Shown: positions 3,274 to 23,187, numbered from the stretch's first letter. The stretch is DNA of 64,000 nt from Rhodosorus marinus CCMP1338 (GCA_029953675.1 JAMWBK010000003.1:1922001-1986000), one strand, 5' to 3'. The notes: generated by a model from the sequence alone, not told the origin. Numbers and translations are program-made.

Positions 3274-4419
3274 ATGCATACGCGTTACTTTGCAAGGATT
3301 TTCCTGGTGTTCGCTGTTGTTGTGAGCGTCGTATCTGCGGCAACGATCAGTCTAGACTGTAGAAGGGACCTGAGAAGTCAGATCCGGAGTGCTCCATCGG
3401 GTTCCCGGCTGGTGGGTGATGGCAGGTGTTTGTGGACGACTCGAGACACCATTCGCATCACGCGGAGGATTTCCCTGAGTAACTTTCGACTGAAGATGGC
3501 TAGTGGAGTTGGAAGACGATTCGCCATGTCCATTGATTCTGATGGTGTTCGCGTAAGCGACTTCGAGATGATCGGAAATCTTGGTACAGTGCGGTCAAGC
3601 GCTAGACAGTCGCTCCTGCAGGTTTCAGGGAGCAATTTTCAGATCACGAACGGTAGATTTACTGATTCTTCGAGGGATGGGATTACTGTCCAGCCCAAGA
3701 GAGGACGTGCGATCAACGGGGGAACGATTAGAAACGTGTCTGGCAGAGGAAACGATCGGGATGTGGTGGCTCTAAACACTGAGCGAGCAGGCGCGATTGG
3801 CACCAGGAACATCGTCGTTGACGATATTGAGGCTTACAGCAGCCCTAGTAGAGGAGCTGTTGAGGTTGCAGATGGTGTTGAAGATATCACAGTCAGAAAC
3901 GTGTACGCGGAGGGCTGCTTATATGCAGTAGCAATACAAGATCACTCCCGCAGTCGCCTGGAGTCGATAAACCGCGTTAAAATCAGCGACATTACTGCGG
4001 TGAACTGCGGGTACGGCATCCTCGCCCAGACAATGGCTCTCAGGCATTCGGATATTTCCATGGAAAACATGACATTTCGTAGATGCCGGAGAGCTATGCT
4101 GGTTAAAAACTTGGACCGAGTTAAGGTCAGCGGCGTTAGGGTGTCACAGTCAACTAGTAGCGGAACGCAGGTTGACTTCCAGAGCTGCAATGGAATCGAC
4201 CTCCAGGGAATAAGCTTCAGCGACAGTTCAGCGAGGAAGACTGCAATCAGAATCTCTGACTCAACAAATGTCCGAGTCTCACGAGCAGTGCTTAGGTCCA
4301 GTACAAGCTATGACTTCGGCATGAAAATCTACCCCGCACGAGGGCGAGCGAGTTCCTCCCCCCAACTTCAGAGCAACGACCTTCGGGCTGCACGAGTTCC
4401 CTTAAGGATCTTTCGCTGA
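3274..4419 (+). CDS. Secreted right-handed parallel beta-helix (pectin lyase-like fold) protein, paralog 1
   Basis: Intronless ORF; first ATG at 3274 opens a signal peptide (MHTRYFARIFLVFAVVVSVVSAA); beta-helix-type periodicity (NIVVDDIEAY, DITVRNVYAE); family motifs NDRD, EVADG and IQDH shared with four other ORFs in the window. Confidence 0.85.
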   Translation: MHTRYFARIFLVFAVVVSVVSAATISLDCRRDLRSQIRSAPSGSRLVGDGRCLWTTRDTIRITRRISLSNFRLKMASGVGRRFAMSIDSDGVRVSDFEMIGNLGTVRSSARQSLLQVSGSNFQITNGRFTDSSRDGITVQPKRGRAINGGTIRNVSGRGNDRDVVALNTERAGAIGTRNIVVDDIEAYSSPSRGAVEVADGVEDITVRNVYAEGCLYAVAIQDHSRSRLESINRVKISDITAVNCGYGILAQTMALRHSDISMENMTFRRCRRAMLVKNLDRVKVSGVRVSQSTSSGTQVDFQSCNGIDLQGISFSDSSARKTAIRISDSTNVRVSRAVLRSSTSYDFGMKIYPARGRASSSPQLQSNDLRAARVPLRIFR

Positions 4420-5148
4420 GTAGCACGCTATGCAAGTTCCATGGTGCCCTCCATGAGGTTGCGCTCAATGTCGGCTGCTATGTCTGCTATAGAAAGCTAA
4501 TAAATCAAGCTCAGAATTACCGGAGCCGGGACTACGAAAAAGTAACCAAACGAGCGAGTAGCCGCCTGGGCACTGTGTTTTGATCCAACCCGTAACTACG
4601 TTTGATAAGAAACCAAGCGCTGGACGTTCTCATTGATGAGACCATTCATCCACCCATTCTTTGTCAATCCTATAAGTTCAATCCAAATTCAATATCAATC
4701 CATATCGTGATAAATGCTATACTGAACCAACAATTACATTCTGTGAGCTTCATTTCAATTTAGTTTTCAACGTTTGTATCGTTTTCAACAGTATAAATAC
4801 TTATCCTTGATAAAAACATTGATTTTAAACTATATCGTAATATTATACGGTTTAATTATTATGCTTTGTGATATTATTTGTAAAATCCCTTGAAAATATA
4901 AAATGGTTGTCAGAGAAATAATGTATATATTTAATTTGGGTTGCCGTTACTTTTGAATTCTTCTGGTACAAGGTTTTTTCATCATCGGTGCGTGGATGAC
5001 AAATCCAAGGGCCATGTGGTAGTGAACAAGAAGATGCTTATTCGACAGTCATGGAAAGATAAGGACTTAAGGATGCCTGGGGTGATGCTTAATGCAGAGA
5101 ACTGCTGATGATTTAAATGTGTGTGGGAAGACGGGAGGCTAGCAAACG

Positions 5149-6309
5149 ATGAAGCTGAGCGTGATTGTTCTGGTGGGTTTGATTCCCACTTTTGCGGCGG
5201 GTGTCATTGTCCAATTGGACTGTGCGAGGGATTTGGGAGAGCAAATTGAGACTGCCGAAGTGTTTTCGGAACTGCATGGAGATGGGAGCTGCACATGGTA
5301 TGTGTCGAAACCCATCAAAGTGTTGGTGCCAATGACCATAAGGAAGCTTCGAGTCGTTTTGAGGAGTTCAGAAGGGATCCCAATGATCAAAATCCTAGCT
5401 CGATCGGTGACGATGACTGAGTTTGAGCTAATAGGCAATAACAAGATGGTAGCTGGGACTGCAAGGGAAGCTCTTGTTCAGGTGTTCAAGAGCGCCTTTC
5501 ACATAGCCAGAGGAACTTTCAGGAATTCTACGAAGGATGGTGTTCAGGTTAGGTCGATTGCGGGTGCCCCTCCAATCACAGGAGGCGTCCTCCGGGATCT
5601 TGTAGGGAGACATAACCATCGGGACCTCGTTTCCCTCACCACTCTCGATGGCGGGAAGAGCCTTACAAGAAACATCGTCGTGGAGAACATCCGAGCTTAT
5701 GGCAGTAGGGATCGAGGAGCGGTTGAAATCAGCGATGGTGTTGAAGATATATTTGTTCGAAGCGTGTATGCGGAGAACTGCTACTACGCCGTATCGATTC
5801 AGGACCACGGTGTAAGCGAGCTCGAGACGATTAGGAGGGTTTTTGTGAGCAATGTCGTGGCGGTCAGGTCACACTTTGCCGTTGTTTCACAAGTCGAATC
5901 GATTCGACATGGCGATGTATCGATCTCCAGAGTCATTGCTAAGAACTGTGAGCAAGCTCTCGAGTTGAAAAACCTCGATTGGGTTAGAGTTGATGATGTC
6001 CGAGTCATTGCGGCCTCCACTACTGGTTACCCGGTCGAGATAAAAAACTGCAAAGACCTCAAAATTCGGGACGTATCCTTCGTTGGAGGGGGACAAGCAA
6101 GAGGCGCGATATTGATTGCGGACTCGACCAACGTTCGAATCGCAGGCATCACGCTCAGCGAGAAAACAAACGTTTTCTTTGGCATTACAATCTTCAGAAT
6201 GTTTGAGAGATTTCAGCCCGGGCTTCAGATCTCTCAGGTCGATTTGAATGCAGCGACGGGAAGGCAGATTAACATAAGAATTACTCCTCCACACCTAAGG
6301 GTGCCCTGA
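5149..6309 (+). CDS. Secreted beta-helix protein, paralog 2
   Basis: 386-aa intronless ORF; signal peptide MKLSVIVLVGLIPTFAA; motifs NHRD, EISDG, IQDH; N-terminal C-x16/17-GSC-x-W pair as in the other paralogs. Confidence 0.87.
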   Translation: MKLSVIVLVGLIPTFAAGVIVQLDCARDLGEQIETAEVFSELHGDGSCTWYVSKPIKVLVPMTIRKLRVVLRSSEGIPMIKILARSVTMTEFELIGNNKMVAGTAREALVQVFKSAFHIARGTFRNSTKDGVQVRSIAGAPPITGGVLRDLVGRHNHRDLVSLTTLDGGKSLTRNIVVENIRAYGSRDRGAVEISDGVEDIFVRSVYAENCYYAVSIQDHGVSELETIRRVFVSNVVAVRSHFAVVSQVESIRHGDVSISRVIAKNCEQALELKNLDWVRVDDVRVIAASTTGYPVEIKNCKDLKIRDVSFVGGGQARGAILIADSTNVRIAGITLSEKTNVFFGITIFRMFERFQPGLQISQVDLNAATGRQINIRITPPHLRVP

Positions 6310-6530
6310 TCCAGACCCAAGAGTAGCTGTCACGCGTGGTTGGAGGAGCGGTAAAAGAACCTAAGCAAAGAACCCATGCAAATAAGGATCAAGCCAGTGC
6401 TCCAGGCACTCATCTGCAGCTTTGTCGAGGCTGTACGAAACCGATGAGGGCAAAGGCACAACTTGACGACGCTCGTGTGGAACATTTCGGTCTATTAGTG
6501 TCGTATACTGATCGAGAAATAGGGATTATT

Positions 6531-6801
6531 TTTTTTTTGTCTATACCGACGCAAGTGGGTCATCTTCCGTCACTCTACTCCAACAATCTATAGAATAGTA
6601 ACAAACTAAAAGCAGACTTTGTAAGTAAATCCAGTTATCTTCTGCTCATACTAAAGGAACCGAAGAAAAGACTAGACTTTTTTTTGTTTACTCTGATGCA
6701 AGTTGGTCATCTTCCCGTGGCTCTGCCTCAACAATCTATCGAATAACAACCCAAAAAAAAATGTTTTTACGTAAAGCCAGTTCTGTTCAAACAAAAGGAA
6801 C
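6531..6801. repeat. Degenerate tandem duplication, two units of about 145 bp
   Basis: Both units contain T-tract..GCAAGT(G/T)GGTCATCTTCC..CAACAATCTAT(A/C)GAATA..CCAGTT..AAAGGAAC. Confidence 0.8.
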
Positions 6802-7783
6802 TTATTGCATCCCTGGGTTGAGGAGACTGCAGTTCACGACGGTGGGCAGAGGACACAAGCGCGAAAGGCTCCTTTGTCTTGAAACTGCTAGCGCAGCCTT
6901 GGAATGAAACTAATGGGGAACTCCAGCGAGGATAAGACAAAGTCTACCCAAACCGCTCTGGGAGAAACAGGACGGCTCAAGGCGGCCTATCCAAGCAGGT
7001 ACTAATGATATCCAATTTCCGAACTAAAAACGCTTGCTCTATTCATTCAGCAAAAGAGACAACGCTGGATCTCATCAGGCTAGGTAAAGTCCGTGCCCCG
7101 AATCACAATAAGAATATGAAAGTATCTGGTAGAAGACTCGGGACCAGACAGTTCACCGCTGTAAACGCCACAAGCCATCCAAGACTCCAGCAAGGTGCAT
7201 ACAATTGCTCCACCTGGAAAAAGGCAGCAGAATATGGTCGGTCCGGCTGTTCGTTCATCTCGTCCCTCAACCATTTTCACTCACGTCGATGTCTCTATAA
7301 CTCCGACATAAAACCTCCTTTTTTAAGAATATGACAGTTAAAATTTGTCCGTATTCATTTCTAAATTGACTCTTCCAATACGCGTTGCCCCGTGTAAATT
7401 CTACAATAATACATAAAAGACCTACCAAAATTTTATTTCATTTAGTTTTTAAAAACTACATGCACCCCATAAGATATATGAATTCATAACCGTAAATATG
7501 AATTATTAAAATAATAAACACTACACTCTAAATATTTCTTTTAGACAGTTCATAATTTGCTATAAATTGTAATATATTAATTGATTTATGAAAGAAAAGA
7601 AATTTTCTGAGGGGGTTGGATCTGAAATCTATGGCCCCCTACCCTTCACTTCTCTTGTCACTCAGGCGTTCTTTCTTTCTTTAATTAGTTTTTACCCCCT
7701 GGGAGCTCTCTATGGAAATTCCTAAGCAACAAGCTTCATTGGAGCATAACTGAGAAGAAATTATCGAATTGTGCTAAATGTAG

Positions 7784-8620
7784 ACCAGTAGAAACCATTC
7801 AAGCGGATACTCAGCGGAAGAGTATATCATATTCTAGAAATATAGGTCTTAGTTTAGAGTGATATTTTCTAGAATAGGACCTGTCCTGTGTTTTTTTCTC
7901 TAAGCAAGTTTGTCAGTTAGGATCAGCTGGCGGGAGGGCGGTTTTGGACGGCCTTGGCTACTACTGGCAAAGGGGTGGGTTTACGACAAAGGCAGTATAT
8001 TTAGAGTTGCCCGCTTCAGATACAGAAATAGAAAAGAGCGTTGTGCTCGTTGTTGAGAATCGTTTGACTCCGGTACTGTTTTTTTTTGCATCAGTCTTTG
8101 AAGGTATGGAAGCTAGAGTGCCGCGAAGGCGGGCTACTACGATGGCAGTGGCCGAGTGCCAGTTCCATGGGGGTGGTCGAGTACTAGTTCGATGGGAGTG
8201 GCCGAGGGCTACTCTGACGTCATTTGTTCTCCATGCTTTCGGTTGATTCTGAAGGAGCTCTTCAAGCCTCATCCCAGAGCGTCCACGTTCGAGACCTTTT
8301 CTCGTACTGTGTGCATAGCAGACTTCGCTCCTATTTGCCAATATCGGAATGCGAAAAACAAAAACAAAACACAGAAGTGGAAAAGAACACTGTGCACGTT
8401 GCTTAAGAATCATTTGGCCCTAGTATTTTTTCTGTCTCAGTCTTGGAAGGTTGGGAAGTCGTGGCACTTGTCCTGACTTGGGCCCCGCTCCCTGTTTCCC
8501 CCTGGGAACACTTCAGGTCTACTCAGGCTGCGCCACATAGAAGTCGGGAATTGGCTGTCTGCTGAAAATTTCCTACTGATTGATAGTTTTAGTGTCCACG
8601 TAGGGAAGTCCTTCCATTAA
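7784..8620 (+). CDS. Possible multi-exon hypothetical gene or leader upstream of paralog 3
   Basis: Several GT-AG junctions can be joined in frame (..AVLDGLGYYWQRGGFTTKAVYLELP..RLTP|SAAKAGYYDGSGRVPVPWGW..|LLEGWEVVALVLTW..). No start codon or family recognised. Confidence 0.25.
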
Positions 8621-8839
8621 CTTAGGTCGAATCGACATCTGTTTCAATCTGGTTGGAGCGAGCGACGTGCACTGTCTACATAGCAGACAGGGCGAATTGA
8701 TCTAACTGGTTGAGAGAAAGGCTAATGCTCGCTCTACAGTGGTACTTATTTAAACCGAGATTCTTCTCCATCCAGCGTTTCTGGAGGGCATGGAAGGGAG
8801 AGGTCAGAGAGTCGACGCGAGGTGCTTCGATTCTGTATT

Positions 8840-10006
8840 ATGGACGTTAAAGGGAAAGTTCTGGCTGTGGGTCTGCTTCTAGTAGTTCTTCTATCCACAG
8901 GGGCTGAAGGATATTGGAAGCGTCTGATATGCGGTACGAGTCTAAAGACACAAATCGATAATGCTCCCGCGGGTGCCTATCTCCTCTCAGATGGAAGTTG
9001 CACCTGGAACGTACGATACACCATCATGGTGCGAAAACCGATAACTCTGCGCGGGGTGAAGGCAAAGCTTGTTGAAGGAATTGGTGGCAGGCCTCTTATG
9101 AAAGTGTTTGCTGAACGTTTCTACCTTTCAGACTTTGTTTTTATTGGAAACCGGCAAAGCGTGGAGCAGTCCCAAAGGGCGTCCTTACTGTACATTTCCC
9201 AAGGCGGGTTCAGAGTTCGAAGAGGAAGTTTCATTAACTCGACCAGAGATGGAGTGTCCGTCTATCCCGACCGCAGCGTAAAGAACCCGAAACCGATCGT
9301 CGGAGGGGATATCAGACACATCATCGGGGATGGCAATGTTCGGGATGTAGTTTCCCTCTCTACTGCAGGAGATGGAAGAATCTCGACTTCGAACATCAAA
9401 GTTCGGAACGTCACGGCCTTTGATTGCAGTAAGAAAGGGGCTGTGGAAGTGAGCGATGGCGTGCACAACATCGATATCAGAGATATTTCAGCCGCTAGGT
9501 GCATTTATGGTATTTCGATTCAGGATCACGGCAGAAGTGGATTTGAAACCAACACCCAAATCCAAATATCGAATGTAACTGTAGTCGACAGTCTATACGG
9601 TGTCTTGAGCGAGACCAGCACCAACGAGCATTCGAATATCTCGATTACGGGGGTGAAGCTTGTGAGATGTCACAACGCAATGCTGCTGAAGAACATTCAA
9701 CAACTTGAGGTAGACGACGTGCAAATCTTCTGGGCGAGAAAAGCAGCTGAAACACAGATAGACGTTCAGGATTGCAGTGGTTTAACAGTACGAAAACTAA
9801 CTTTTGATAGTGGAGGGTCAACTGATACTGCCATCAGGATCGCGGGATCGAAGGATGTGACATTCGATGGATTGAGAATTGCCTCGAGGTTTAAGTCGCT
9901 ATACGGAATCACCTTTTACAGAACATCCTTTGACGGTTTATCTAGCCTGCGAGTATTCAACATGGACGTAGAGACGACGCTCGAGCAACGCGTAAAGGTG
10001 GTCTGA
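8840..10006 (+). CDS. Secreted beta-helix protein, paralog 3
   Basis: Intronless ORF; ATG at 8840 opens signal peptide MDVKGKVLAVGLLLVVLLSTGAEG; motifs NVRD, EVSDG, IQDH. Confidence 0.87.
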   Translation: MDVKGKVLAVGLLLVVLLSTGAEGYWKRLICGTSLKTQIDNAPAGAYLLSDGSCTWNVRYTIMVRKPITLRGVKAKLVEGIGGRPLMKVFAERFYLSDFVFIGNRQSVEQSQRASLLYISQGGFRVRRGSFINSTRDGVSVYPDRSVKNPKPIVGGDIRHIIGDGNVRDVVSLSTAGDGRISTSNIKVRNVTAFDCSKKGAVEVSDGVHNIDIRDISAARCIYGISIQDHGRSGFETNTQIQISNVTVVDSLYGVLSETSTNEHSNISITGVKLVRCHNAMLLKNIQQLEVDDVQIFWARKAAETQIDVQDCSGLTVRKLTFDSGGSTDTAIRIAGSKDVTFDGLRIASRFKSLYGITFYRTSFDGLSSLRVFNMDVETTLEQRVKVV

Positions 10007-10015
10007 TCCGCTCCA

Positions 10016-10074
10016 AGATACTTTGCTCCGTTCCACTATGAAGGGCGGCAGTAGGGGAACGGAGCAAAGTATCT
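10016..10074. repeat. Perfect 19-bp inverted repeat (hairpin) just after the stop of paralog 3
   Basis: AGATACTTTGCTCCGTTCC (10016-10034) and GGAACGGAGCAAAGTATCT (10056-10074) are exact reverse complements. Confidence 0.9.
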
Positions 10075-10282
10075 ATCCTCTGTTCATACCTTTTTTTTTT
10101 AGTCTCGTTGAAGCGACGCTCACCATAAAGAAACACCGAAGATTTTACTCTGCAACCTTGCCCCGGGGCTTGATGGAGTTCGTAAGATCCAATGTCCAGC
10201 TTGGCACCCTACGTCCCGCCCGAGTGACCGAAGCGGTTGACCTGCGTGCACAGGTCTTGGAAGCCGGTTTCTTCAGGAGTGA

Positions 10283-10331
10283 TTAGCGCATTTGCGTAGG
10301 GTAAGTATACCCTATGCAAAAAATGCGCTAA
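10283..10331. repeat. Long imperfect hairpin
   Basis: TTAGCGCA-TTTGCGTAGGGTA-agta-TACCCTATGCAAA-aaa-TGCGCTAA: about 21 bp stem with one G:U pair and one 3-nt bulge. Confidence 0.8.
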
Positions 10332-12000
10332 AACTGGCAGGCATTCAGTGAGCAGTAGTGAGTTCAAACCGCAAGGAATTCCCGGAGAAACGCCTACGGG
10401 CGCTTTATTGGCTCTTTGATCATCATCGACTATCATTCAACTATCGGAAAAAGCCTTCAAACTATCGGAAACGTCTGCAAACTCTCGGATGGATTATGCA
10501 GATGGACTCGGATAGGCTATAGGCAAATGGCAGCAGGGGTTATGTTAGTGTTGGCCATGCAGAGAGAAGAACACTCTTTGGGATCCATGACTCGCGACAA
10601 AATTATAATTATTCGACAAGCACGCTGTACTGAAAGTTAAGTACAAGCGATACTACATGCCGTTCCGTAACGGCTAGTTGTGTCTTACCAGTGGGGGCCC
10701 CGTGCGACAGTTGAGAGGGACCTCCAAAGGGAAACCGGGATACTCTCTATAGAGTGCAATTCCCTTTTGCCACCACTTCGTATGGAGCTGTGTGCGAGAC
10801 GCTCTCTAGTGTTGTCGGAAGCACAAATGCTTTGGAAGCTTTTTAGAGGTGAACTACTTTGCGAACGTTTCATCCTCCCAGAGCAAGACTACAATAAGCA
10901 ATTGAAACTATGGAGAAATCGATGACTCTATCCAAATACGTGCATAGAAACGCTTCCACATATGTGTACCCCTGCGGCAGCTGAGACGCAACACGAATTT
11001 CTGAACTATCTAGGTTGTCAATAATACCCCCTCAAAAAGGCTTCCGGAACATCACAAGTGGCAACGTCGGCTTACAAATGACGTCGGCTTGTAAATTTCG
11101 AAACGGATATCAACCTCAGGCAAATCTCTATTGGGTGGAAAGTACCAACTTGAACTAATTCGTTCTCCGAATCCCCCAAAAACACGCCATCGCCTTTTGC
11201 CCTGCCCCACAAAACCCCCTCGTAAGGCACCCAGTCCTCCTTTTTTTCCCAAGATCACCGCCATTCCAGCACCTCTTCTAACAAAGGAACGTTACGTACT
11301 CTAAATAACAAAATTAGAATTCATGAAAGCAAAAAAAAAACGTTGAATTTCCTTCGTGCCTCTTCACGGGCTTGACTAGGTAGTAAGGAGTTGAGGGAAC
11401 TCTAAAGCAGAGCATTCACCAAACTACGCTTGCACTATCATCCCATCCAAAACCCGCCGTCTCCCTCCCCCCCACAAAACCAAATAAAACCATAAAAACT
11501 TCTCGCTATTTGTGATCAACATGAATAAATTTACTTTTGAAAATAAATTCGCCTGCTTACAGAAATTTACAACCGAACTCTTCGAAATGAAACGGTCATT
11601 CTAGAATTATTGAATAATAATAGTTTTTGGGAGAGAATAGTGGATCTGGACTATTAGCGTCGAAATAATATATCGCATATATGATACTTGATATGGATGA
11701 AATTGAAACATTTATATATAATATAGTATATATGGTATAAATATTGTTTTTAGTGTATGGGGATAGTTGGTATGGAGATGAGGTGGTTCGTTTAATGTCC
11801 TCTAGTGGATACTAGCGGTTGAGAAGAGGTGTCCAAGGTCTGGTGAGAGTCATGTGTGAAGAGTGAGGTAGTGAAAGGCGTATTAGAGAACGGGAGTGAT
11901 TGAGTGAAGGTGTAAAGCAAACTTTACGATGCTTGTGGTGTCTTCTGGTATGTCCTGCAGGTAGAAGGGGTATTTAGGAGTTGCCTTGGGAGGTTTCAGA

Positions 12001-13143
12001 ATGAAGCGTCCGGGAGTATTGGTTGTTCTGGTGGGGTTGTGGTTGATATGTGGAAGTCATGGAAAGGCTATTGTGCTCAAGTGCGGGAGTAGCCTGAGAG
12101 AGGAGATCGAGAAAGCTGATAAGTATGACATTCTTGTTTCGAATGGGGGATGTAAGTGGGAAGTGAGTAAGGCCATTATAATCAACAAGCCGCTCACTTT
12201 GAAGGGCATTCACGTGACTTTGCAATCTGGAGTTGTGGGATCTATCTTCTCTCTGAGGTCAAATAGGATCACTATTTCTGACTTTACAGTGATCGGTAAC
12301 CGAGATTCTGTAACCAAGGGCCAATCACTGATTAACGCATACAGAAGTGGCTTTGTCATTGAGAATGGCGCCTTGAAATCGTCCTCGAGCCACGGGATTA
12401 GAGTCGCGCCAGTATCAGGAGGGTTAGAAATTGACGGAGGAGTCATAAGGGACGTGGTTGGCCATAGAAATATCGGCAATGTTGTACTTCTTTCGACATC
12501 CAGGGGCGGGAAAACCTCAACAAGGAACGTCCTGGTTGAAAACGTTCGGGCCTACGACAGCAAGTTCAAGGGTGCTCTCGAAGTTTCGAACGGTGTTCAG
12601 GATATTTTCGCGCAAACTTTGTATGCAGAACGATGCGTTTTCGCCTTCGCTGTTCAGGATCAAAGCTTAAACCAGCAAAGCATCAGACGTGTATTCCTGA
12701 CCAGCGTTGTCGCGAGGAAGTGTGATTACGGAGTTTTAAGCAAGGGTGGTGTACGGCACTATGACATCTCTATCTCCGGTGTGATCATTGAGAACTGCAA
12801 AACGGCAATGACCCTTCACAACCTCAACTGGGGGAGGGTCTATGATGTTAGAGTTATCGACGCGGGAGACGGAAAGCCTCAGATTGGCATCCTGAAGAGC
12901 GACAATCTGACGCTTCGGGACGTCTCGTTTATGGGAAAGAGTCAGTCGGGATCGGCCGTTTTGATCAGGGAATCCAACAAAGTTCGAGTTTCAGGGGTTA
13001 TGCTCAGCGAGACCACCTCCTTCACTTGCGGCATCCTGTTCTTCGAGACCTCCCAATCCAAGTTGATCACCGCTGATATCTCGGGGATCGATCTAGGGGC
13101 AGCCCAGGAAGATGTCAGAGGAATCGAATACAAGGGTGATTGA
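12001..13143 (+). CDS. Secreted beta-helix protein, paralog 4 (candidate catalytic residues substituted)
   Basis: Intronless ORF; ATG at 12001 opens signal peptide MKRPGVLVVLVGLWLICGSHG; aligns with the paralogs but reads NIGN, EVSNG and VQDQ at the conserved motifs. Confidence 0.85.
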   Translation: MKRPGVLVVLVGLWLICGSHGKAIVLKCGSSLREEIEKADKYDILVSNGGCKWEVSKAIIINKPLTLKGIHVTLQSGVVGSIFSLRSNRITISDFTVIGNRDSVTKGQSLINAYRSGFVIENGALKSSSSHGIRVAPVSGGLEIDGGVIRDVVGHRNIGNVVLLSTSRGGKTSTRNVLVENVRAYDSKFKGALEVSNGVQDIFAQTLYAERCVFAFAVQDQSLNQQSIRRVFLTSVVARKCDYGVLSKGGVRHYDISISGVIIENCKTAMTLHNLNWGRVYDVRVIDAGDGKPQIGILKSDNLTLRDVSFMGKSQSGSAVLIRESNKVRVSGVMLSETTSFTCGILFFETSQSKLITADISGIDLGAAQEDVRGIEYKGD

Positions 13144-14564
13144 ACGCAAGCAACCATTGTATCAGAAGTGACGTTAAACTCTAACAAAACCCGCAGTGCA
13201 GAGGACGAAATCAAAACTAACTGTCTAGTTCACAGCGGAAGTTCTCGCGTGGAAACGGTCTCCGCACAACTCCGCGTCCTCAGCCATGTTTTCGCCTTGT
13301 TTTCTTCTGTGCGTTCCTAACATAGCCAAACATGATTTCAAAAAGGGAAGCAAAGCAACGTAATTCTCGTCGTTCCTCAGTAGAAAGACATGACCAGAGG
13401 TCGACATATCACAACAATCACCAATCACCTTGTCCTTTCCAACCCCCGCCAAAAGGAGACGTAAGTTCAACCGCCGTACGCACTTGGCTTGAACGCAGTA
13501 CTATGACCTACTGGTCATAGTTCTCAGGGTGCGTCCTGGGTGGCGCTTCAAGGCCTAACCCCAGACTACCGCTACCTCTGCAGGGTGAGGAAACACGATC
13601 AATCGATTATTTTCTCGGCAATACTCCTGTTCTTTGAGCGTGAGAGCAGTTCAAAGAACCATAACTGATTCTTATAGCATGCTGCTGCATCCTTGTTGCC
13701 TCCAAAATGCATCCTTGGAGCTATTGGCAACCTCAACGAAGCCTAGCATAGAGCTTTACAGGGTTTCACTGTTGAATGCTCGATCTCATACAGCTCAAAT
13801 CCTTAAGACTGAGAGCCTTAATTCTTTGCAATTGAGCATAGCTATCAGAGCTCGGAGGCTCATCTGGCTGGTACCTGTACACCAACGTCAACGCCATTGA
13901 GATGGTCGTGACTTGATCCCGAGCTCAAAGCGAAGGAGAACGTTGCCTTTGCGGAGAAGGAAAGCGCTTGGAAGTCAGCAGAGAACTCTTGTAGCGACTG
14001 CTGATGTCCAATGCTGAACACACACGACCCTCGCTGGGTGGTCTCCCCAGCTCGTTCAATGGGTCTATTCGAATTCGAGGGGCTGCAACCTTTGGAAGCT
14101 CGATGCAAACCCTCCAGCTAGCACAGTGCGAAGGGTTGCAGAGACCTCTGGATAATGAAAGTATTGCACATCGAATAAATTCTATGAAACAACCCCGCCG
14201 ACCCTCGCTTCGTCCGTACCTGCCACTTCGGATCTATCGGACTGTGGTGCGGGTACTGCCCTTGGAAGCTCAAACCACCAGAACGCGAAGCGTTAGTGAC
14301 CTCCTGAGAAAAACCGAACATGTTGGACAGTAAACGGTCACAATGAAAGAACAAGTACGGCCATGATTGCATCTGTACTACCCCTTCAAATACTCTAGGC
14401 TGACTTCTAATAGGCACAACCTCTGCTGGATGCATCCCCCAATGCTGGGCGCTAACGACTTTTACATTTGACAGAGGGGTAGCGTGACGACTGGTGATGG
14501 TCTAGTAACGGTCTGGTGACGAACCCTGCTAGCGAGGCGTATAACAACGGACAACTGGCAAGCT

Positions 14565-15688
14565 ATGACAGTCGGATTTCTATTCCACACGGCTGTGAAG
14601 CCATGTAGGAGAGACAAGCATGTCGTAAACCTATCGATTTCGGGTGCAGTAGCCGGCTTCTTCCTGTCGAGGGTGAGTATCTCCCCTCTGCCGCAGCGAT
14701 CTGAGCTTTCAGCGGAGCTGATCGTCGAAAGGACATCGTCTAAGACATCCTTTGGGGTAAGTTTTCGGCTTATATGGTATACACGGACCGGTTTGTGATG
14801 TTTCTCATGTGATTCCTTCGTTTCCTTGCTCAAGGTTAAACCTAGTGATGTTCTGGTTACCCCTCACCTCGAGCCAGCAGAGAACAAAGTTAGCATTCCT
14901 CGAGTTGGGGTCTTCCGCAGAGAGGATTTCTTGTTGTTTAGCACTACGGGGATCGCAATGGTTTACACAACCAAGAAGCTTTACGATCAGCACTACTTCC
15001 CAGTCGGAAAGCGACCGATTGACTTTCCAGATTCCAGGGTATTCAGTATCGTTACCCTACAGGTAAGAATTGTTCCGTTGGTTCGACGTCCCATTGAACA
15101 GCTCCAGCATCTTGCAGTAGCTTCTTGAAGGCCTGATCACCTCAGCGCATCCCGGTTTCACCTTTCTTTGTGCAGTTGGCGTTTGAGGGCGATGACCGAG
15201 AACATGTAAGGAAGAGGGTAAAACACATCTGTCAGAACACCAAGCCGACGTTTGTGGGCCTCGCTGGAGCGCTATCGAAGCTATCCACGGCGATCCTGTT
15301 TAGATCTCGTTTTGCGAGTAGAGGTCACTGCGATGTCCGCAACGCCGAGAATGTCGACGATGCGAAGATGCAATACGAAAAAGCTCTAGAGGAGGTGAAA
15401 CAACTCTGGGAACAGCACATGGAAGACGAGATAGATGAAGGAGAGCAGGAGTTGTGCACGGTGATAATTCTCGTCGTGGCCGTCACAGACGACGTATTCT
15501 CGAACAAGCCGCTTACAACGGTACCAGAGGTTCTTCGCGCCCTCCAAACTGTAAGAGCCGACCAGTTCTGCGGGATGGAGGCCATGTGCTACCCTACCGA
15601 GGAAGACGACTGGCTCACGAAATCCCAATTGCACAGAATGTTCCCTCTCCTCGATGAGAGCGAGCCCGGGGTCCAAAAGAAAGTTTAA
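14565..15688 (+). CDS. Plastid-targeted DUF1517 family protein (FLAP1-related), 3 exons
   Basis: Exons 14565-14756, 14835-15062 and 15176-15688 join in frame across GT-AG introns. Transit-peptide-like N-terminus. SIVTLQLAF, VIILVVAV and EAMCYPTEEDDWLTKSQLHRMFPLL match the DUF1517 pattern (V-LQVAL..IVVTILVA..EVLWTPQ..D-LS..ELL..YP-L). Confidence 0.75.
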
Positions 15689-15845
15689 CCAAATCCATAG
15701 CTATGTTCATATTACTACCAAAACAAAAACCTGTTCCTAACCCAGAATCTAAATGTATAGATCCGAGTCTCGTACCTACTCTATGTGCTCAGATAACATC
15801 TGCAGATCCTCCTAATAAGGAAGAGCTAGCAAAGGTGAAAAGAGC

Positions 15846-16766
15846 TTATGTATACCTACTGAGCTCTATTCTAAACTTGTTTTTTGAGGTCTTGGAGACG
15901 TTCTCAACTACCACCCTGCCTTTCCCACGGAAGGTAATCATATCACCTTCCTTTACAGATGAGCTGCCGTTCTTGACCTGCTTCCAGTTCACCAAAACGT
16001 TTCCTGTTTTGATCTCATCGCCTATCTTCGTGCGACTGATCCCAAAACCAGCTGATCCTACAGAATCAAGTCGCATGGACTTCTCAACGGTGTTGATGCT
16101 CCTCTTCTTAGGCTCTTTGTAGTACAGCTTGTCCCATTCGATGGGTTGCACCGTTACAGGCACTGATCTTACTTGTGATAGCACTGTCTGGAGCGGATTG
16201 ACTATATCAGGATCAACGATGACATGAGCTCCTCGATCACCGAGGAGGATGATATCTCCAATGAAATCTCGATCGATCCCAGCTCCGGTAATCGCCCCAA
16301 GGAAGTCTCCGTGACGTGCCGGATCGAATAGGAAGTTTCCTCGGATTTCAATCGGCGTCAAGAAATGCCGATCCTCCTCTTCTTCAATTAAGAGTGAAAG
16401 ATCTACGAGTTCTACGGGGGAGAGGACCATCCTCTTCCTCTCGGCCTGGGGAAAGCCACCGGCAGTGGTGACCGTCAGGTCCGCAAGCTTTCCCAAAGCA
16501 TTTCCGAGCTCCAAACTCTCTACCGGGCGCAGAAAATGGGTGGGAATTACAGAAAACTCCTTAAGAGCGCGTTCCGCGACATCAACCACCCTCGCCGCAA
16601 TATTCTCCTCCACGCCGTGGTGCCGGGCGTGCTTCAAGATGTCGTCACGGGGCACCAACCCACGACCAGCTGCCACTCGAACCGAATTTACATTTCTCCC
16701 AATACAACATCGCCTTGTACCGAAATGAGGACTACGCTTGATCAAAAACAGGTCAACAAACCCCAT
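15846..16766 (-). CDS. Photosystem II S4-domain RNA-binding protein (YlmH/Sll1252 family), plastid-targeted
   Basis: First ATG at 16766 (MGFVDLFL..). Motifs TTAGGFPQAERKR, HGDFLGAITGAGIDRDFIGDI and the C-terminal S4 domain SMRLDSVGSAGFGISR..VKEGDMITFRGKGR. Confidence 0.9.
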   Translation of the reverse strand: MGFVDLFLIKRSPHFGTRRCCIGRNVNSVRVAAGRGLVPRDDILKHARHHGVEENIAARVVDVAERALKEFSVIPTHFLRPVESLELGNALGKLADLTVTTAGGFPQAERKRMVLSPVELVDLSLLIEEEEDRHFLTPIEIRGNFLFDPARHGDFLGAITGAGIDRDFIGDIILLGDRGAHVIVDPDIVNPLQTVLSQVRSVPVTVQPIEWDKLYYKEPKKRSINTVEKSMRLDSVGSAGFGISRTKIGDEIKTGNVLVNWKQVKNGSSSVKEGDMITFRGKGRVVVENVSKTSKNKFRIELSRYT

Positions 16767-18098
16767 TCCTCGCACAAAACCCGCACTGCAAGCCCCCAAA
16801 AAACTGAACAACACAAAAAAAAGGTGCCCTGACCAAAAACCTTCTTCACATACAGAACAATCCAACAACAAAACTCATTCTTCTCACAGACGCCTCCCAA
16901 TCTATCCCAAAATTTCCAAGCTACTTGAATACCACCACCATTCCTCACAGACTCAGACTTGGCTTCAACATAGTCGGCAATAAATGACTTATCAATCCAC
17001 GACCATTGCAAAGCAAAGTTCGCATCGTTTTAAGGACAAACATACACACAACGGGAGATTTTTAATTCTAAATTTTGAAAATATCTATAATTTAGAAATA
17101 GATACTTGAAAATTAAGGATTTATGACGGATATTTCTAATTCTTAGTGTGTTTGAATGTTGATTTAGTCTCTTTGCTTTAGGGGGTGGTGGTCATGTTCT
17201 TCCCACGCAACAGGATGAGGAGCACGTTACGAGATGTGGTAGTGTCAATACAGCACAATAAGAAATATGAAAATTCCAGGTTATTCGAATGTTTTGAATA
17301 GCTTTGGGTCGTCCTTGTACCCAAATTGAGAGCGCGAACCTATTAGGAGTGGGTGACCAAGCACAAAGGGATAGACGATGATAAGTGGAGGTAGGCGAGG
17401 GTCCTGCCGACTTAAACAGAACGTCTTGGAAGTTGAGCAGGCGGATGACACTACTGCCTACCTGCCCGGCGATCTGAAGGAGGAAGTCCGCGTTTTGGAG
17501 AAAGACTCGTAGTCGACGGAGTCTTCACGGTTTGTAAGCTCACTGAGTTCTGCTCGCTGCTCCAGTCCTCAAGGACAACAACCCGACCTTCTCCGCGGCG
17601 CAAAGTGTGTTTTGATTTTGTTAATGTTACAAAGCCAGGTATTTACTTTACTCGGTGTCCGCTGTCTTCGTTACTGTTGCCCCATCCTTCATCCTCTGGG
17701 AGGATTCCGTCTGTCTCTTTTCTGGGCTAGTACTTCTAGGTCGTCCTCGCAGCTTGATTCGGGGTCCACAGTCTTCGGTCCCATGTACTCTGCTGACTCA
17801 GCGTAGTCAGTGGCCTTTTGGAAGTCAGCGACAAGTGCACCGGAGGAAGACCACGCCAACGATGTGCGGAATTCTCATGTGTTGCGAGAGGAATAGAAAC
17901 CATCTGATCTAGCTCGGCGACTCTCACAAAACATAGATAAGACATCCTAGTACAAGAGCAAACCTACCAAAAGACAAAGCGATGCGCAACGACCGATTCA
18001 AGTACCCGAGCGTCTATAAGAGCTGCAGTGCAGATATTCAGCTTATGGCAGCGCATGGTAGGAGCAGCTGCTCCACGGCGCCGCGACGAGGCCGGTAG

Positions 18099-18302
18099 GT
18101 AACGTTCGCGAGTGGAAAAAGGTTTAGTTTGGTGTATGGCATCAATCAAAAGCTCACCGAGCACTCAATCATGCGTATGCAGTTCAAGAGGCTCCACCGG
18201 AAATGCGAGAAATGTGGACTGAACATCCACAAGACAGCGCAGTGCAATGCATCAATCAAATGCCGCAAGTGCATCCAGTATGGACACTATCAAAGGGAGT
18301 GA
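18099..18302 (+). mobile_element. Decayed retroelement Gag/ORF1 fragment with tandem CCHC zinc knuckles
   Basis: Frame from 18099 reads ..KCEKCGLNIHKTAQCNASIKCRKCIQYGHYQRE*. The first knuckle is an exact CX2CX4HX4C; in the second the last Cys position is TGA (18300-18302). An upstream in-frame TAG is also present. Confidence 0.7.
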
Positions 18303-21300
18303 CGGAGCAAGAAAGTCCACCACAACAGCAAGAAAGTCCACCGCGAACAAGGAACTTTCTTCGCACTCTGTGCCCATGGCCTAGAAACAAGAGAAATCGA
18401 AGCTCTACTTGCTGTTTGTATTAGGGGTTAAACTCCCATTCCACAAATTTAATGGAAGAACCGACTAGGGGGGTCGAAACGTCTACCGATATTCAAAATA
18501 AAATAAAATAAATCTCTATTTTTATGTTTGTCATAAATATAATTCAGGGGTAATATCCAATTCCAGAAATTCAAGTGTGGTTGAAACTAAGGACGGGGGT
18601 AGGGATTTCGTTTCCAAAATTGTATGAGGGTTTGCAATGAATGATGGAGCAGTAGGGTTCAGCGTGGCCACCTGCTTACTAAGAGCACTGCATGCTTTCG
18701 TCAGAGTTTTATTGCTTCCCAAACCGTCAAATTAGAGAGTTGAGAGAACGAAAGCGGACGAGTGACTTTAAAAGACGGCTGATCATCATGGAAGTACAAG
18801 CAGCGACCCCAATGGTAGTTTCTGATCTGTAGCTAGATCGAGCGTTTCCATAGGAAAGGGCGAAACGGAACGGGAACTGATAGAGCGAGAAGCTTCAGCG
18901 GAGGAAGACGACGAAATACGGGCGCCGACGATTCCAGCTTTGTTGGTTGGAGAAAGAAAAACTGGGACTTAGAATCTGTATGCGCTGGGGTCGCGTCTAT
19001 CACAGGCTATATTCTTCCCTCGGGGTCCGCCTAGGAACTTTGTCTAGTTTCCGCCAAAACTAGAAATTAAGCGGTGGTTGGAACTTAGGAGGGAGGAATC
19101 TCGTTTCAAAAATTGCTTTAACTGCTTATCTTCATGTAAACAGCGATTAAGCGCACCTCTACCTCGAGATTCCGCCCCGACCTCGCCGTTAGCTGGTTGT
19201 TCCCCCACACCGAAACCCCATTTTGGCAGTCTACTTGAAGGACTTCAGCGCTATAAAGCTGTCACGGAAGACCGCTGAATCTCCTGAAATGCTGAAATGC
19301 TGAACAGTTCCCAGTAAATTCTACCCCTCCATATCCACACGGCTGCCAGAAATCTTCTGAAAAAAATCGAATCGAATACTCCTCTCCTGTCAACAGGCAC
19401 CCGCTGTCCAGAAATCCAGGGCTACTAACCCAATTTCAGGTCTAGAGCACCCTGGTCGCATGAGCAGTCCGCCAGGAGCTGCCGGCGCCTCTTAAAGGCC
19501 CAACAAATTTCCAGGTAACCCAGCAGACAACGTGGGCAATAGAACAAGCAGGAGTTGTCCTATTTCGCCAGAGAACCAGATTAGGACATGACTACAAGCA
19601 TCTATAGCTCATGGGCGGGGTGCAGGGAGGGGGGAAGCGTTGAGATGGTGTAATAGAACATTTTTGGGATAATACTGCCAGCATGTCCGTTCCAAGTCCC
19701 TACTGAACACCACGTCGATAACTCCAATAATGCCAAATCTTAACTTAAATCCAACGTTCCAATAGCATTCGCTTAACAAATAAAACCATGTAATTGTTAA
19801 TAAAAACAAAATATTAGATCATATTAACGATAAAAATTGTAAAAATCGATCTACGGACAGAACTGTACGTTGGCTCAATTCAAAGTGTCAGCAAGATGGT
19901 CAAATATTACTGAAAACTTATTTTGTGGGGTCTGTCGGTACCTGGGGAACGCCGACAGGCAACCCGTCAGGTGTTTCCCACTGAAGGAATGGGCTGGATC
20001 TGCATCGTCGTGAGCTTTGATAAGGTATTAATATTATATATGGACGGTTTATGATTTTGATCTGATGGGGTGAGAGTGCTCTCATCAGCTGGTTAAGTGA
20101 AGAACGAGCAGGATGAAGTTGTTTGTATTTCTGTTGGCGGTGATTGCTGTCGCCACAAGTTGCGCGGACGTTATTCCGCTTGACTGTGATAAACCTCTGA
20201 AAACTCAGATAGAAGGTGCTCCTATACACTCTGAGCTTGTGGCCTACGATTCCTGTGTATGGATGGTTGATGAGACGATTCGAGTTAGGAACCCGGTGAC
20301 GATTCGTGGAGTTACCGCGAGGCTGCCAGATGGATTAGGAAACGCTCCACTTCTCGAGGTCCGGACGGAAGGGTTCACCATGACCGATTTTGAGTTCATT
20401 GGAAACATTGAATCCGTGGAATTCGAAGATAGAGAATCCCTCGTGGCCGTGGCTATGGGAGGGTTTCATATCGAGCGGGGAGTTCTGAGAAGCTCATCCC
20501 AGCACGGAATCCTTGTCCGTCCAATGGGTTTTCATAAACACGACATAGTGGGTGGTGTGCTCAGAGATCTTGCGGGATATGGCAACCGAAGAGACCTTGT
20601 ATCAATTACGAGCATGAGGCAGGGCGAATATATCTCAAGGAACATCGTTGCTGAGAACCTTCGAGCGTACAATCAATGGGAACGAGGAACCATCGAAGTC
20701 ACCGACGGAGCAAAGGACGTGTATATAAGCAACGTCTACGCCGAGAACTGTTTTTACGCCGTTGATATCCAGGATCATGACGAAGGCAACGACGAATCGC
20801 TTGCTCATGTGAACAGAGTGTTCGTTAGCAATGTCATTGCAATGAACTGCACTTGGGCTATCCACTCTGAAACGTTTGTCGCTGGCCACTCAGACATATC
20901 AATCTCAGGCGTTGTTGCCACGGACTGCATGAACGCCGTGCTACTGGACAGAATCAACCGGCTCACGCTAACCGATGTCAAAGTTGTCAATGGGAGGAAC
21001 GAGAGCACCCAAGTGGACATAGCCCACGCCAAGTACGTGAACATGAGAGAGCTTTCTTTTGCTGGCGGTGTAGGCGAGTCCAGTGCGATCACGCTTCGGC
21101 AATCTGAGAAGGTCAGAGTCCAAGACGTCACTCTCGCAGATGATACAAATTTCAAGTACGGAATAACTGTGAACGCGACAGTTCCAGAGCAAGAAGCTTT
21201 CGCGACGCTCAGCTTCACAGGCAACGATTTAGAAGCGGCGAGCGAGGAGGAGATTCAGTACTACTTTTTCCACGAGTCGCTTTAACTGGATTTCCATTGA

Positions 21301-21614
21301 CCTACAGAGCCCTGTTGTGCCTCATGGCAGCTTTTCACATATTCGTCAAAGAGAAACGTATCGAATTCTATGCAGCTGTACGGGAGTAGTGGGCCGCAGA
21401 TGAGCTCGGAGCCAAGCCGTCGACACTATAGTCAGATCGCAGAGTGTCGGAGGGGGCTATCTGATGAGTTTCCGTCTGTACATATCAGTCATTTATACAA
21501 GTAAAAACGTTTCTCAAAAACTTGGGAGTACATCGCCCAAAACCCAGAAACCTGAAACCACCTTCATAGTTCGACGGCGGGACAGTGCTTCCGCTGCTCA
21601 TCTCTTATTGTCGG

Positions 21615-23187
21615 CTAATCGAGATCAATGACTTCGGGCATGTATTCCCGCAAGTCCCTATAGACGGCCCGGTTTCGCAGCTTCGAAAGTGATCCATTTA
21701 TAATCTGTCGCGTGCGTTCAGGGCTGAGTTTCAACGCCTTGGAAATCTGTTTCATTGTTCTTTCTCCACCATCATCAAGCCCGTAGCGAAGTCGGATCGC
21801 CGCGCGCTCACGGGGATCAAGGTACTTCCTCAGCGCCTTGTCGCAGTCCATTTTGAGCATGCTCTCCACAAGCTCCTCATCAAGGTCAACTTCGGCTTGC
21901 AAAACATCCCCGACCGTCAAACCTTCAGCTTCTCCAGTCAACGCCAAGTCGGTCGACACAAAGCTCTGGTTAACGGTCTCTACAATCATCTGCATCTTCC
22001 CATCAGTCATGCCAACTAGTCTGGCCAATTCATACTCCGTCGGTCCACGTCCGTGAGCTTTCACGTACTCCTTATGAACCTTCTTCATCCTCGTGTAGTG
22101 CTCATGAACCCTCGTTGGGATCCTCACCGGTCTTTCAATTCTATGCAATGCTCTCGACGTAAGGGACTATAGGAGTAGCTTCTGAGTCAGCCAGGAACCT
22201 CCGTTCATCAGCAAGCTTGGAATTCGAAGGAGGACCTACCCTAACCCAGTATGTAGCATACGTGGAGAAACGGAAACCCTTTCCTGTATCGTACTTCTCA
22301 GCTGCTCTCATAAGTCCGAATACGCCTTCCTGCATCAAATCCTGCTTCAGAGAATCATCGATCATGCCGTAGGGTCGTGTAGATTTGTTCACAATCGACT
22401 GTACAAGTCGAAGATTTGCACTCACAAGAGCTTGCTTAGCTGATATCCCAGAGATCATGACTTCCTTCAACCGTTCAACATCCTTGTTTTGGGCAAATCA
22501 ACAACCGAAAGCGTGAGCAAAAGGGTCAAGATGAGTCAACGGGTGGCTTTGTTATCTGAGGAAGCGGGCTTTTTCTTACCATCTCAAGAATTTCTGCCCA
22601 TTCTTTGAAAGTTGGGTTTCGTCCTAAAGTTGCTCGGAGTCTTCAAAGTAGAAGAGGAAGGGGAAGGGGAAGGGAATGGTTAACGTTCTCTTGAGGTCGA
22701 TTTGTCCTTTTCAGGTCGCGGGTTAAGATGCTAATGGCACTGACTTTTCTTTACAAGCCTGGAGCTTTGTATATTTCTCGATTCTTCTAGCCAGATCTAG
22801 CTCTTCTGAACGGGTCAATAGATCTACTGTCCTTACATCAGTGATGTAACGAACCAGGGAACTAGTGATGTATAGTGGCTTCTCTCTCGACTTCCTAGAC
22901 GCATTTTTCCTAACTTTGATCTCGCTCTTGACCTCCTCAACCTCCAAATCAAGCCCTTCAACCTCAGAAACCTCAGAAACCCATCCCTCGACACCATCCA
23001 ACCTCGAAAAATCAAACTTTTCAACCGACGGATTCTTCGCCCGCTCAACCTTCCTCGACCTCGGCCTCTTACCAACCTTCACATCCGCCTCCTTAACTAC
23101 ACAAGCCGCAGGCTTTCTATCCTTTACCACCTCCACTCCACCACCTCCTCCCCCAACAAACCCGGCAAAACCCATAAACTCAGCCAT
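21615..23187 (-). CDS. SIG: Nuclear-encoded plastid RNA polymerase sigma-70 factor, 4 exons
   Basis: Transit-like N-terminus MAEFMGFAGFVGG; region 1.2 (LLTRSEELDLARRI); region 2 (ANLRLVQSIV, DLMQEGVFGLMRAAEKYDTGKGFRFSTYATYW); region 3 (RPVRIP); region 4 HTH (LSPERTRQIINGSLSKLR). GT-AG introns restore the frame. Confidence 0.95.

Follow-up and report, generated by a model that had tools for sequence, protein, structure and literature searches.

Putative secreted β-helix depolymerases of sulfated glycans, most likely of bacterial origin, amplified in the red alga Rhodosorus marinus

The 64,000 bp stretch of Rhodosorus marinus CCMP1338 DNA analyzed here (JAMWBK010000003.1:1922001-1986000, called the window below and numbered from its first base) carries five related intronless genes on one strand whose predicted products are secreted right-handed β-helix proteins. 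We consider it somewhat better than an even bet that they belong to a secreted depolymerase family that would attack anionic sulfated glycans, was derived from a bacterium and was then amplified in Rhodosorus, with one of the five copies probably non-catalytic. The array sits on a 3.35 Mb contig (JAMWBK010000003.1) of assembly GCA_029953675.1, which appears to be the chromosome-level R. marinus CCMP1338 assembly (PMC10250338). The five genes are as follows.

3274-4419, plus strand: paralog 1, 381 amino acids, catalytic type; uninterrupted open reading frame (ORF), annotated single-exon gene
5149-6309, plus strand: paralog 2, 386 amino acids, catalytic type; uninterrupted ORF, annotated single-exon gene
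8840-10006, plus strand: paralog 3, 388 amino acids, catalytic type; uninterrupted ORF, annotated single-exon gene
12001-13143, plus strand: paralog 4, 380 amino acids, degenerate type; uninterrupted ORF, annotated single-exon gene
20113-21285, plus strand: paralog 5, 390 amino acids, catalytic type, acidic; uninterrupted ORF, annotated single-exon gene

A preliminary description of this DNA had reported five same-strand, intronless ORFs of ∼380-390 amino acids with a β-helix architecture, and both points hold. The ORF scan and the public gene models agree (each model has one exon and the same length as its ORF), and the five proteins are 33-40% identical in pairwise comparisons with BLASTP E values of 1e-55 to 1e-88, so their resemblance is far beyond chance. 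AlphaFold2 predicts a right-handed β-helix for paralog 1 with high confidence (predicted local distance difference test score, pLDDT, 91.6; predicted template modeling score, pTM, 0.89) and the same fold for paralog 4 (pLDDT 89.4); both models are regular stacks of ∼10 rungs. The generic Pfam Beta_helix model (PF13229) matches paralog 1 at 28.8 bits against a cut-off of 25.9, falls below the cut-off with paralog 2 and has no match in paralogs 3-5. By their predicted fold the proteins belong to the pectate-lyase-like right-handed β-helix superfamily.

A candidate active site is formed by a set of residues, N102, R111, R162, D163, R193, E197, D200, Y217, Q222, D223, H224, and H258 (paralog 1 numbering), each of which is at least 92% conserved among 71 bacterial domains of the same family. 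All catalytic-type Rhodosorus copies retain the set, barring an R/K exchange at 193 and E in place of D163 in one copy, and its conservation persists across the bacterial and catalytic-type algal copies at about 30-35% overall identity. Much of it falls within a short part of the paralog 1 gene:

3757-4047, plus strand: conserved-residue stretch of paralog 1, spanning four consecutive rungs, with R162-D163 at 3757-3762, E197 through G201 at 3862-3876, Q222-D223-H224 at 3937-3945 and H258 at 4045-4047

Each rung of the paralog 1 model consists of a long and a short strand, and the conserved residues lie just before, within or just after the short strand on six successive rungs (102/111, 135, 162-163, 193-200, 217-224, and 258); in the short strands hydrophobic residues alternate with E197 and Q222. 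In β-helix glycosidases and lyases the substrate cleft lies at this part of the rungs, and the strand register, as opposed to distances, suggests a single groove for the conserved residues. It is this polar constellation at the usual β-helix cleft position that leads us to read the four catalytic-type copies in the window as putative endo-acting depolymerases of an anionic glycan.

Three motifs that belong to this constellation, N-x-R-D, E-x-x-D-G, and Q-D-H, had been described as invariant in the five proteins. They are indeed intact in paralogs 1, 2, 3, and 5, but at the same sites paralog 4 has N-I-G-N, E-V-S-N-G, and Q-D-Q, the result of substitutions R162G, D163N, D200N, and H224Q; it also carries R111G and Y217F. 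Very similar changes are present in two further sequences, the paralog 4 counterpart in a second gene cluster on contig 7 (discussed below) and P0052, a sequence of unconfirmed source that is 84% identical to the paralog 4 type and groups with the Rhodosorus copies. R111G/A, R162G, D163N, D200N/S, and Y217F are common to all three, and H224Q occurs in two of the three, P0052 having retained H224. Degeneration of this kind is also found in two adjacent contig 7 genes (L040:6134-8491 and 10001-12394) that encode proteins of 785 and 797 amino acids with two family domains each, in which a Pro/Thr-rich linker joins a catalytic-type domain to a degenerate one; R111, R162, and D163 are likewise lost from the C-terminal domains. 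Between paralog 4 and its contig 7 counterpart the proportion of nonsynonymous differences (pN) is 0.26 and that of synonymous differences (pS) is saturated. Since paralog 4 is intact, under purifying selection and predicted to fold, it is read as a non-catalytic derivative, probably a pseudoenzyme or a binding protein. More generally, paralog 4 and these C-terminal domains lack Arg, Asp, and Tyr residues of the set, in some cases His as well, while the fold and the sequence are kept; they are probably non-catalytic polysaccharide-binding units, and the degenerate domain that follows the catalytic-type domain in the two-domain proteins is placed as a carbohydrate-binding module would be.

That these copies keep the scaffold and lose the polar constellation could also be taken to mean that the whole family consists of β-helix proteins of the wall or of adhesion that are not enzymes and serve the mucilage as structural or lectin-like components. 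β-helices do serve as adhesins as well (PfbA is among the structural matches discussed below), and many of the Rhodosorus copies are basic. However, retention of eleven polar residues by bacterial and catalytic-type algal copies that have diverged so far, and the position of the bacterial genes in degradative operons, one of them fused to a sulfatase, make a purely structural role very improbable.

Sequence comparisons set the family apart from those already described. No match to the Pfam glycoside hydrolase (GH) family 28 model (PF00295) was found at E<=1 in any of the five proteins, none of the five matches the RHGA/epimerase model PF12708, and no NCBIfam family was found for them; the NosD model TIGR04247 reaches only 22-34 bits against its cut-off of 300 and covers only the N-terminal cap. 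A profile of the family searched against all PDB chain sequences gave nothing under E 0.04, and no account of the family turned up in literature searches. The idea that it is new thus comes through the Pfam and other profile comparisons, with generic Beta_helix as the only model matched, and these searches support a small unclassified β-helix family with its own conserved constellation, as distinguished by Pfam, NCBIfam, and PDB and not by CAZy or dbCAN models; CAZy families without a solved structure (e.g., GH174 and GH187, both named in a review of fucanases, and recent polysaccharide lyase, PL, families) lie outside the comparisons made. The NosD N-terminal cap, DUF4957, HPE1, and tailspike PHROG 2234 were considered as family assignments and set aside, their matches being generic or sub-threshold. 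The bit scores given above likewise dispose of a NosD-type copper-binding or maturation protein.

Foldseek comparison of the models with PDB returned fold-level matches only (9-16% identity, best E 2e-6, TM about 0.5-0.6). The best of them are the AlgE4 and AlgE6 epimerase modules, GH87, GH28, phage tailspikes, GH82, and chondroitinase B, all of them right-handed β-helices, and the matches among viral models (BFVD) are tailspikes (E about 1e-7). Membership in GH82, GH87, GH110, PL1, PL6, or PL9 was rejected for lack of significant sequence similarity, the resemblance being at the level of the fold. The polygalacturonases and rhamnogalacturonases of GH28 are nevertheless instructive: they are right-handed β-helices about as large as the Rhodosorus proteins, their consecutive rungs likewise carry acidic, His, Arg, and Tyr residues, they act on uronic acid polymers as is presumed for the Rhodosorus family, they are matched by Foldseek at E of about 1e-5 to 1e-4, and hhalign pairs the family with a GH28 neighbor at 85% probability over 164 columns. 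That alignment covers only the C-terminal rungs, so the GH28 catalytic residues cannot be mapped onto the Rhodosorus proteins. The GH28 signature N-T-D/D-D/G-H-G/R-I-K is absent from the alignment, its place being taken by R-D, E-x-x-D-G, Y..Q-D-H, and H; with no PF00295 match either, the earlier remark that the motifs differ from those of GH28 was well founded, and membership in that family was rejected.

The β-helix lyases PL1, PL6 (chondroitinase B/alginate lyase), and PL9 share the fold, and the Rhodosorus family has an Asp on one rung, E-x-x-D on the next and conserved Arg residues. The mechanism of such lyases uses a Ca2+ site and an Arg or Lys base, and by analogy the Asp/E-x-x-D/Arg arrangement would be compatible with both; they differ from the Rhodosorus family in showing no sequence match among PDB chains and weak Foldseek matches (1dbg and 7o7a, each E 5e-4). 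The ι-carrageenase family GH82 is a β-helix enzyme that cuts a sulfated red algal galactan, the type of substrate proposed here, yet its structural match is weak (1h80, E 1.6e-4, TM 0.30-0.42) and there is no sequence match. Phage tailspike depolymerases share the generic β-helix (PHROG 2234 at E 1e-5; BFVD as above), but at 10-16% identity, and the Rhodosorus proteins are single 380 amino acid domains with signal peptides that have no trimerization or head-binding domains.

Prominence of the AlgE modules among the structural matches raises the alternative that these proteins modify a polymer and do not cut it, for example as uronate C5-epimerases acting on the wall polysaccharide of the alga. 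The AlgE4/AlgE6 A-modules are among the top Foldseek matches (2PYG and 5LW3; E 2e-6 to 1e-5, TM 0.51-0.59), the conserved Tyr, two His and several Asp residues recall epimerases and lyases in which the C5 proton is abstracted, and brown algae too have a large multigene family of secreted proteins, the mannuronan C5-epimerases, which are presumed to be of bacterial origin. On the other hand, GH28, GH87, and tailspikes score as well in Foldseek, identity to the AlgE modules is 12-14%, none of the five proteins matches PF12708, and the AlgE catalytic motif Y-G-F/I-D-P-H-D/E is absent, the corresponding strand reading Y-A-V-x-I-Q-D-H. The loci of the bacterial relatives are also catabolic (sulfatases, GH88, GH2, and PL8) and not biosynthetic. 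Membership in the AlgE-type epimerases was rejected on the missing PF12708 match, the sequence of that strand and the weak structural match, and epimerization in general seems decidedly unlikely.

Bacterial gene neighborhoods, together with domain fusions, lend indirect support to the carbohydrate-active role on sulfated or acidic glycans suggested earlier. In Novipirellula artificiosorum (homolog WP_146531287) five sulfatases, two BNR sialidase-like genes, a NanA-like lyase of the DHDPS family, and a NanM-SSF transporter form a run on one strand with the family gene. On one metagenome contig it accompanies an alginate-lyase-like protein, a sulfatase, three GFO/IDH/MocA oxidoreductases, and a heparinase-II/III-like protein, and in a Kiritimatiellia metagenome-assembled genome (MAG) a PL8 lyase and a heparinase-II/III-like protein. 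At 22 further loci the 83 nearest neighbors include sulfatase more often than any other Pfam family, and homologs of a single sulfatase query are present at at least 10 of 35 loci. In a Maribellus MAG the family domain and a sulfatase are joined in one 888 amino acid protein (L009:9800-12463); its operon has the order BNR_4, GH88, sulfatase, GH2, fusion gene, sulfatase, GH28, sulfatase. Fusion partners in other members are F5/8-type-C (galactose-binding-like), 3-keto-disaccharide-hydrolase, FG-GAP plus DUF1961, and DUF6250 domains. Such contexts and fusions are what would be expected of an enzyme that attacks sulfated, uronic acid-containing glycans.

GH88 enzymes act on the unsaturated ends that lyases produce, and no recognized lyase was found in 21 kb of the Maribellus operon. 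The presence of GH88 there, at the one locus where it was seen, makes us lean slightly toward cleavage by β-elimination (a lyase) over hydrolysis. Co-occurrence with GH88, PL8, or alginate lyase was rejected as a general rule, as each is present at 1 of 35 loci.

Secretion had been proposed from a signal peptide on each ORF, and inspection of the five N-termini agrees: every one has a basic n-region, a hydrophobic core of 12-13 residues and a c-region with small residues at -3 and -1, as the -3/-1 rule expects. Read in this way the signal peptides span about residues 1-22 in paralog 1, 1-18 in paralog 2, 1-24 in paralog 3, and 1-18 in paralog 5, and the signal-peptide-like segment has low pLDDT in the models of both paralogs 1 and 4. 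The proteins are therefore predicted to be secreted. A conserved N-terminal Cys pair that had also been noted (C29/C52 in paralog 1 numbering) is invariant in the five-copy alignment, is missing in all four aligned bacterial relatives, presumably forms a disulfide and has the appearance of an adaptation to secretion by the eukaryotic route. All window proteins but paralog 5 are strongly basic, with mature isoelectric points (pI) of 9.1-10.9 (∼10.9 for paralog 1), and 14 of 22 Rhodosorus domains have a pI above 8, compared with a bacterial median of 6.3. High pI values fit proteins that sit in or bind a polyanionic matrix. Paralog 5 (pI ∼4.8) and its orthologue in the MMETSP transcripts are acidic (pI ∼4.8-4.9), unlike the four basic copies in the window, and may have a different substrate or compartment.

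An exhaustive profile hidden Markov model search of 1.84 billion cluster representatives found 440 members at E<=1e-3, of which 115 reach E<=1e-30. The eukaryotic members that bear a name all come from R. marinus, either from the genome (KAJ8903424, KAJ8903138, and KAJ8901153) or from MMETSP0011 and MMETSP0315 transcripts; other Stylonematophyceae genomes may be missing from the protein collections searched. The transcripts, which come from sister strains, cover several paralog types, which are thus expressed. Paralog 5 is 89% identical to R. marinus MMETSP transcript P0002 (its cluster has a member labelled MMETSP0011), which means that its orthologue is expressed, and paralog 3 is 55% identical to MMETSP0315 transcript P0031. 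The bacterial members are spread over Planctomycetota (Novipirellula, Rhodopirellula, Pirellulales, Thermoguttaceae, and Phycisphaerae), Verrucomicrobiota (Opitutales and Pelagicoccus), Kiritimatiellia, Lentisphaeria, Maribellus, and Hydrogenedentales.

In a neighbor-joining tree of 112 domains, rooted on a distant acidic group of sequences used only as outgroup, the Rhodosorus domains form one clade among bacteria. Bootstrap support for their monophyly is 38% with all sequences, 53% when the degenerate C-terminal domains are omitted and 98% (294/300) when one more rogue N-domain is also left out; the low values are thus due to the long-branch C-terminal domains and that one N-domain. The outgroup (P0119, P0124, P0126, and P0131-P0170) has a median pI of 4.6 and looks haloarchaeal or viral, and P0131 matches a tailspike PHROG. 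Three other distant sequences, P0095, P0125 (L036), and P0146, have eukaryote-like signal peptides and lie on ORFan-rich metagenome contigs; P0146 has a C-terminal membrane anchor, and the 113 kb contig that carries P0095 along with a thymidylate kinase gene is possibly from a large virus.

Intronless genes with bacterial homologs invite the suspicion that they are bacterial contamination or an assembly artefact. They lie, however, inside the 3.35 Mb contig between intron-bearing eukaryotic genes (nucleoporin, plastid sigma factor, and DUF1517), and their third-codon-position GC content (GC3) and codon use match those of the surrounding host genes. Host-like composition and eukaryotic neighbors on a chromosome-scale contig mean that the genes are integrated and fully ameliorated. 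Eukaryote-specific signal peptides and the Cys pair, orthologues in independent transcriptomes of other strains and a collinear paralogous cluster on a second contig all point the same way, and the chance of contamination is negligible; it can be regarded as effectively refuted already. The patchy eukaryotic distribution, the integration and the position of the clade among bacteria support a single old bacterium-to-alga transfer followed by expansion. Horizontal transfer from a bacterium to a Rhodosorus ancestor, mentioned in the preliminary description as a possibility, fits what was found (Rhodosorus as the only named eukaryote, bacterial members in several phyla, and a clade nested among them) and is the most likely origin, with a direction from bacterium to alga suggested by the same pattern. 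A recent transfer was rejected, as the composition is host-like and synonymous sites are saturated between the duplicates.

Expansion in Rhodosorus extends well past the window, and the tandem amplification that had been claimed is both real and larger than was thought. A sixth paralog of 403 amino acids, same strand and catalytic type (nearest transcript P0029), lies ∼3.9 kb upstream of paralog 1, about 650-1860 bases before window position 1 (L038:4867-6078); the tandem array therefore begins before the window. Contig 7 (JAMWBK010000007.1, 1151312-1172487; L039) has a cluster that is collinear with window positions 5284-22460. Its family members are:

a paralog 2-like gene, 73% amino acid identity
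a paralog 4-like gene, 59.5% amino acid identity
an inverted paralog 5-like gene, 50% amino acid identity
KAJ8903424, 66% identical to paralog 5

The contig 7 cluster is followed by a sigma factor gene, as the window cluster is, and the DNA blocks of the two clusters are in the same order with 67-72% nucleotide identity. Paralog 3 has no counterpart there, and contig 7 holds the extra inverted paralog 5-like copy. Between the clusters pS is 0.72-0.81 (saturated) and pN is 0.18-0.33, from which it follows that the segmental duplication is ancient and that the copies have since been under purifying selection. No DNA-level repeats were found in window positions 1-23000, and DNA repeats or mobile elements were rejected as drivers of the array, none being found in it; this, together with the synonymous saturation relative to the contig 7 copies, bears out the opinion that the paralogs are old. 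Altogether Rhodosorus has at least 12 family genes, six in the contig 3 array, four in the collinear contig 7 cluster and two that encode the two-domain proteins, with KAJ8901153 included in this tally.

Taken in sequence, the history envisaged is that a Rhodosorus ancestor would have acquired one copy of the family from a bacterium, that the acquired gene gained a signal peptide and the presumed N-terminal disulfide pair, and that tandem and segmental duplication then gave rise to the 12 or more genes. The most plausible substrate of the putative depolymerases would be the alga's own cell-bound, sulfated, glucuronic acid-containing galactan mucilage, which the enzymes and their derivatives presumed to bind polysaccharide non-catalytically (paralog 4 and the second domains of the two-domain proteins) could loosen or trim during growth and division. 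Activity and substrate are inferred here, as are secretion, the disulfide and the direction of transfer, in contrast to the fold, the paralogy, the distribution and bacterial context of the family, the pattern of kept and lost residues, the age of the duplications and the transcription in sister strains. Stylonematophyceae, the class to which Rhodosorus belongs, have cell-bound polysaccharides, and the extracellular polysaccharides of the red microalgae surveyed all contain galactose, xylose, glucuronic acid, and sulfate, Rhodosorus being outside that survey (PMC9031348).

A depolymerase could also be directed at foreign polymers, either the capsules and biofilms of bacteria on the algal surface or dissolved polysaccharides taken as a carbon source. 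The fold and the weak profile matches do resemble phage tailspike depolymerases, there is strong divergence among the copies (pI from 4.8 to 10.9, identity 33-40%), as would be expected of enzymes with many substrates, and the presumed bacterial source consists of organisms that consume algal and other glycans. Against this, the homologs are tied to sulfatases, sulfated polymers being typical of algae and animals and not of bacterial capsules; purifying selection on the copies and on the catalytic residues does not discriminate between substrates. Foreign polymers as the target are unlikely, and we prefer the alga's own sulfated glycans.

Several considerations weigh against even the preferred reading of secreted depolymerases that act on anionic sulfated glycans. 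No activity is known for any member, so that function is argued only from the fold, the conservation and the context, and the argument for a single groove comes from strand register in a predicted model and not from distances. Every structural match is weak, and the top one is a C5-epimerase and not a depolymerase. The bacterial neighborhoods are heterogeneous (some sialic acid-related, some glycosaminoglycan-like, some pectin-like), so that they name no single substrate; many loci are uninformative, and GH88, on which the slight preference for a lyase depends, is found at only 1 of 35. The alga's own polymer as the substrate would be a proposal only. Finally, the phylogeny is distance-based, retention of the long-branch domains lowers support for monophyly to 38-53%, and the tree does not resolve a bacterial sister group.

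A more ambitious form of the depolymerase reading would make this a new PL or GH family with the signature R-D / E-x-x-D / Y..Q-D-H / H, employed by sulfatase-rich marine bacteria to open a sulfated uronic acid glycan and captured by the alga as a toolkit for remodelling its own wall and mucilage, its dead copies reused as binding modules; we regard this as a tentative idea that is short of an even chance. To our knowledge very few enzymes that cut red microalgal sulfated polysaccharides have been found. These polymers are of commercial interest and their structures are hard to solve without specific enzymes, so a family that is present in glycan-degrading bacteria and expanded in an alga that produces such polymers would supply candidate tools for both problems. 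If the reading is true, no endogenous depolymerase of red microalgal sulfated polysaccharide would have been known before, and the system would show clearly how gene transfer from a bacterium shaped the wall of an algal cell, in parallel with the brown algal C5-epimerases. Transfer into a red alga, the large expansion and the probable built-in pseudoenzyme copies are the notable features of the system, and catalytic-type and degenerate copies that are adjacent or even fused offer a natural experiment on the change from enzyme to binding module.

Three genes that are not members of the family lie within or next to the array:

14565-15688, plus strand: intron-containing, unrelated gene of the DUF1517 family (gene call and Pfam match); breaks the array
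15846-16766, minus strand: unrelated gene of the YlmH/S4 RNA-binding family; breaks the array
21615-23187, minus strand: sigma-70-type (plastid) sigma factor gene, duplicated with the segment that carries paralogs 2, 4, and 5

The first two occupy the 7 kb gap between paralogs 4 and 5, so the five genes that had been reported as a cluster are not contiguous; paralog 5 is split off by them. A tblastn search found no additional copy or remnant of the family in the 64 kb window. Introns are scarce in red algae generally, but the DUF1517 and sigma factor neighbors do have them, so the intronless state of the five paralogs is a real local contrast.

Further along the window, a 171-base unit is present twice with 96% identity at 24216-24559, between the sigma factor gene and a nucleoporin-like gene. 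The latter is a large minus strand gene (∼25022-31000) with a NUP159/NUP214 β-propeller match and FG-rich stretches, and it contains, at 26732-27229, ∼11 copies of a 42-base (14-residue) tandem repeat with units like S-L-P-P-L-G-S-E-K-D-K-P-K-A. The sole tRNA gene found in the window is a tRNA-Leu(CAG) gene at 46277-46362 on the minus strand.

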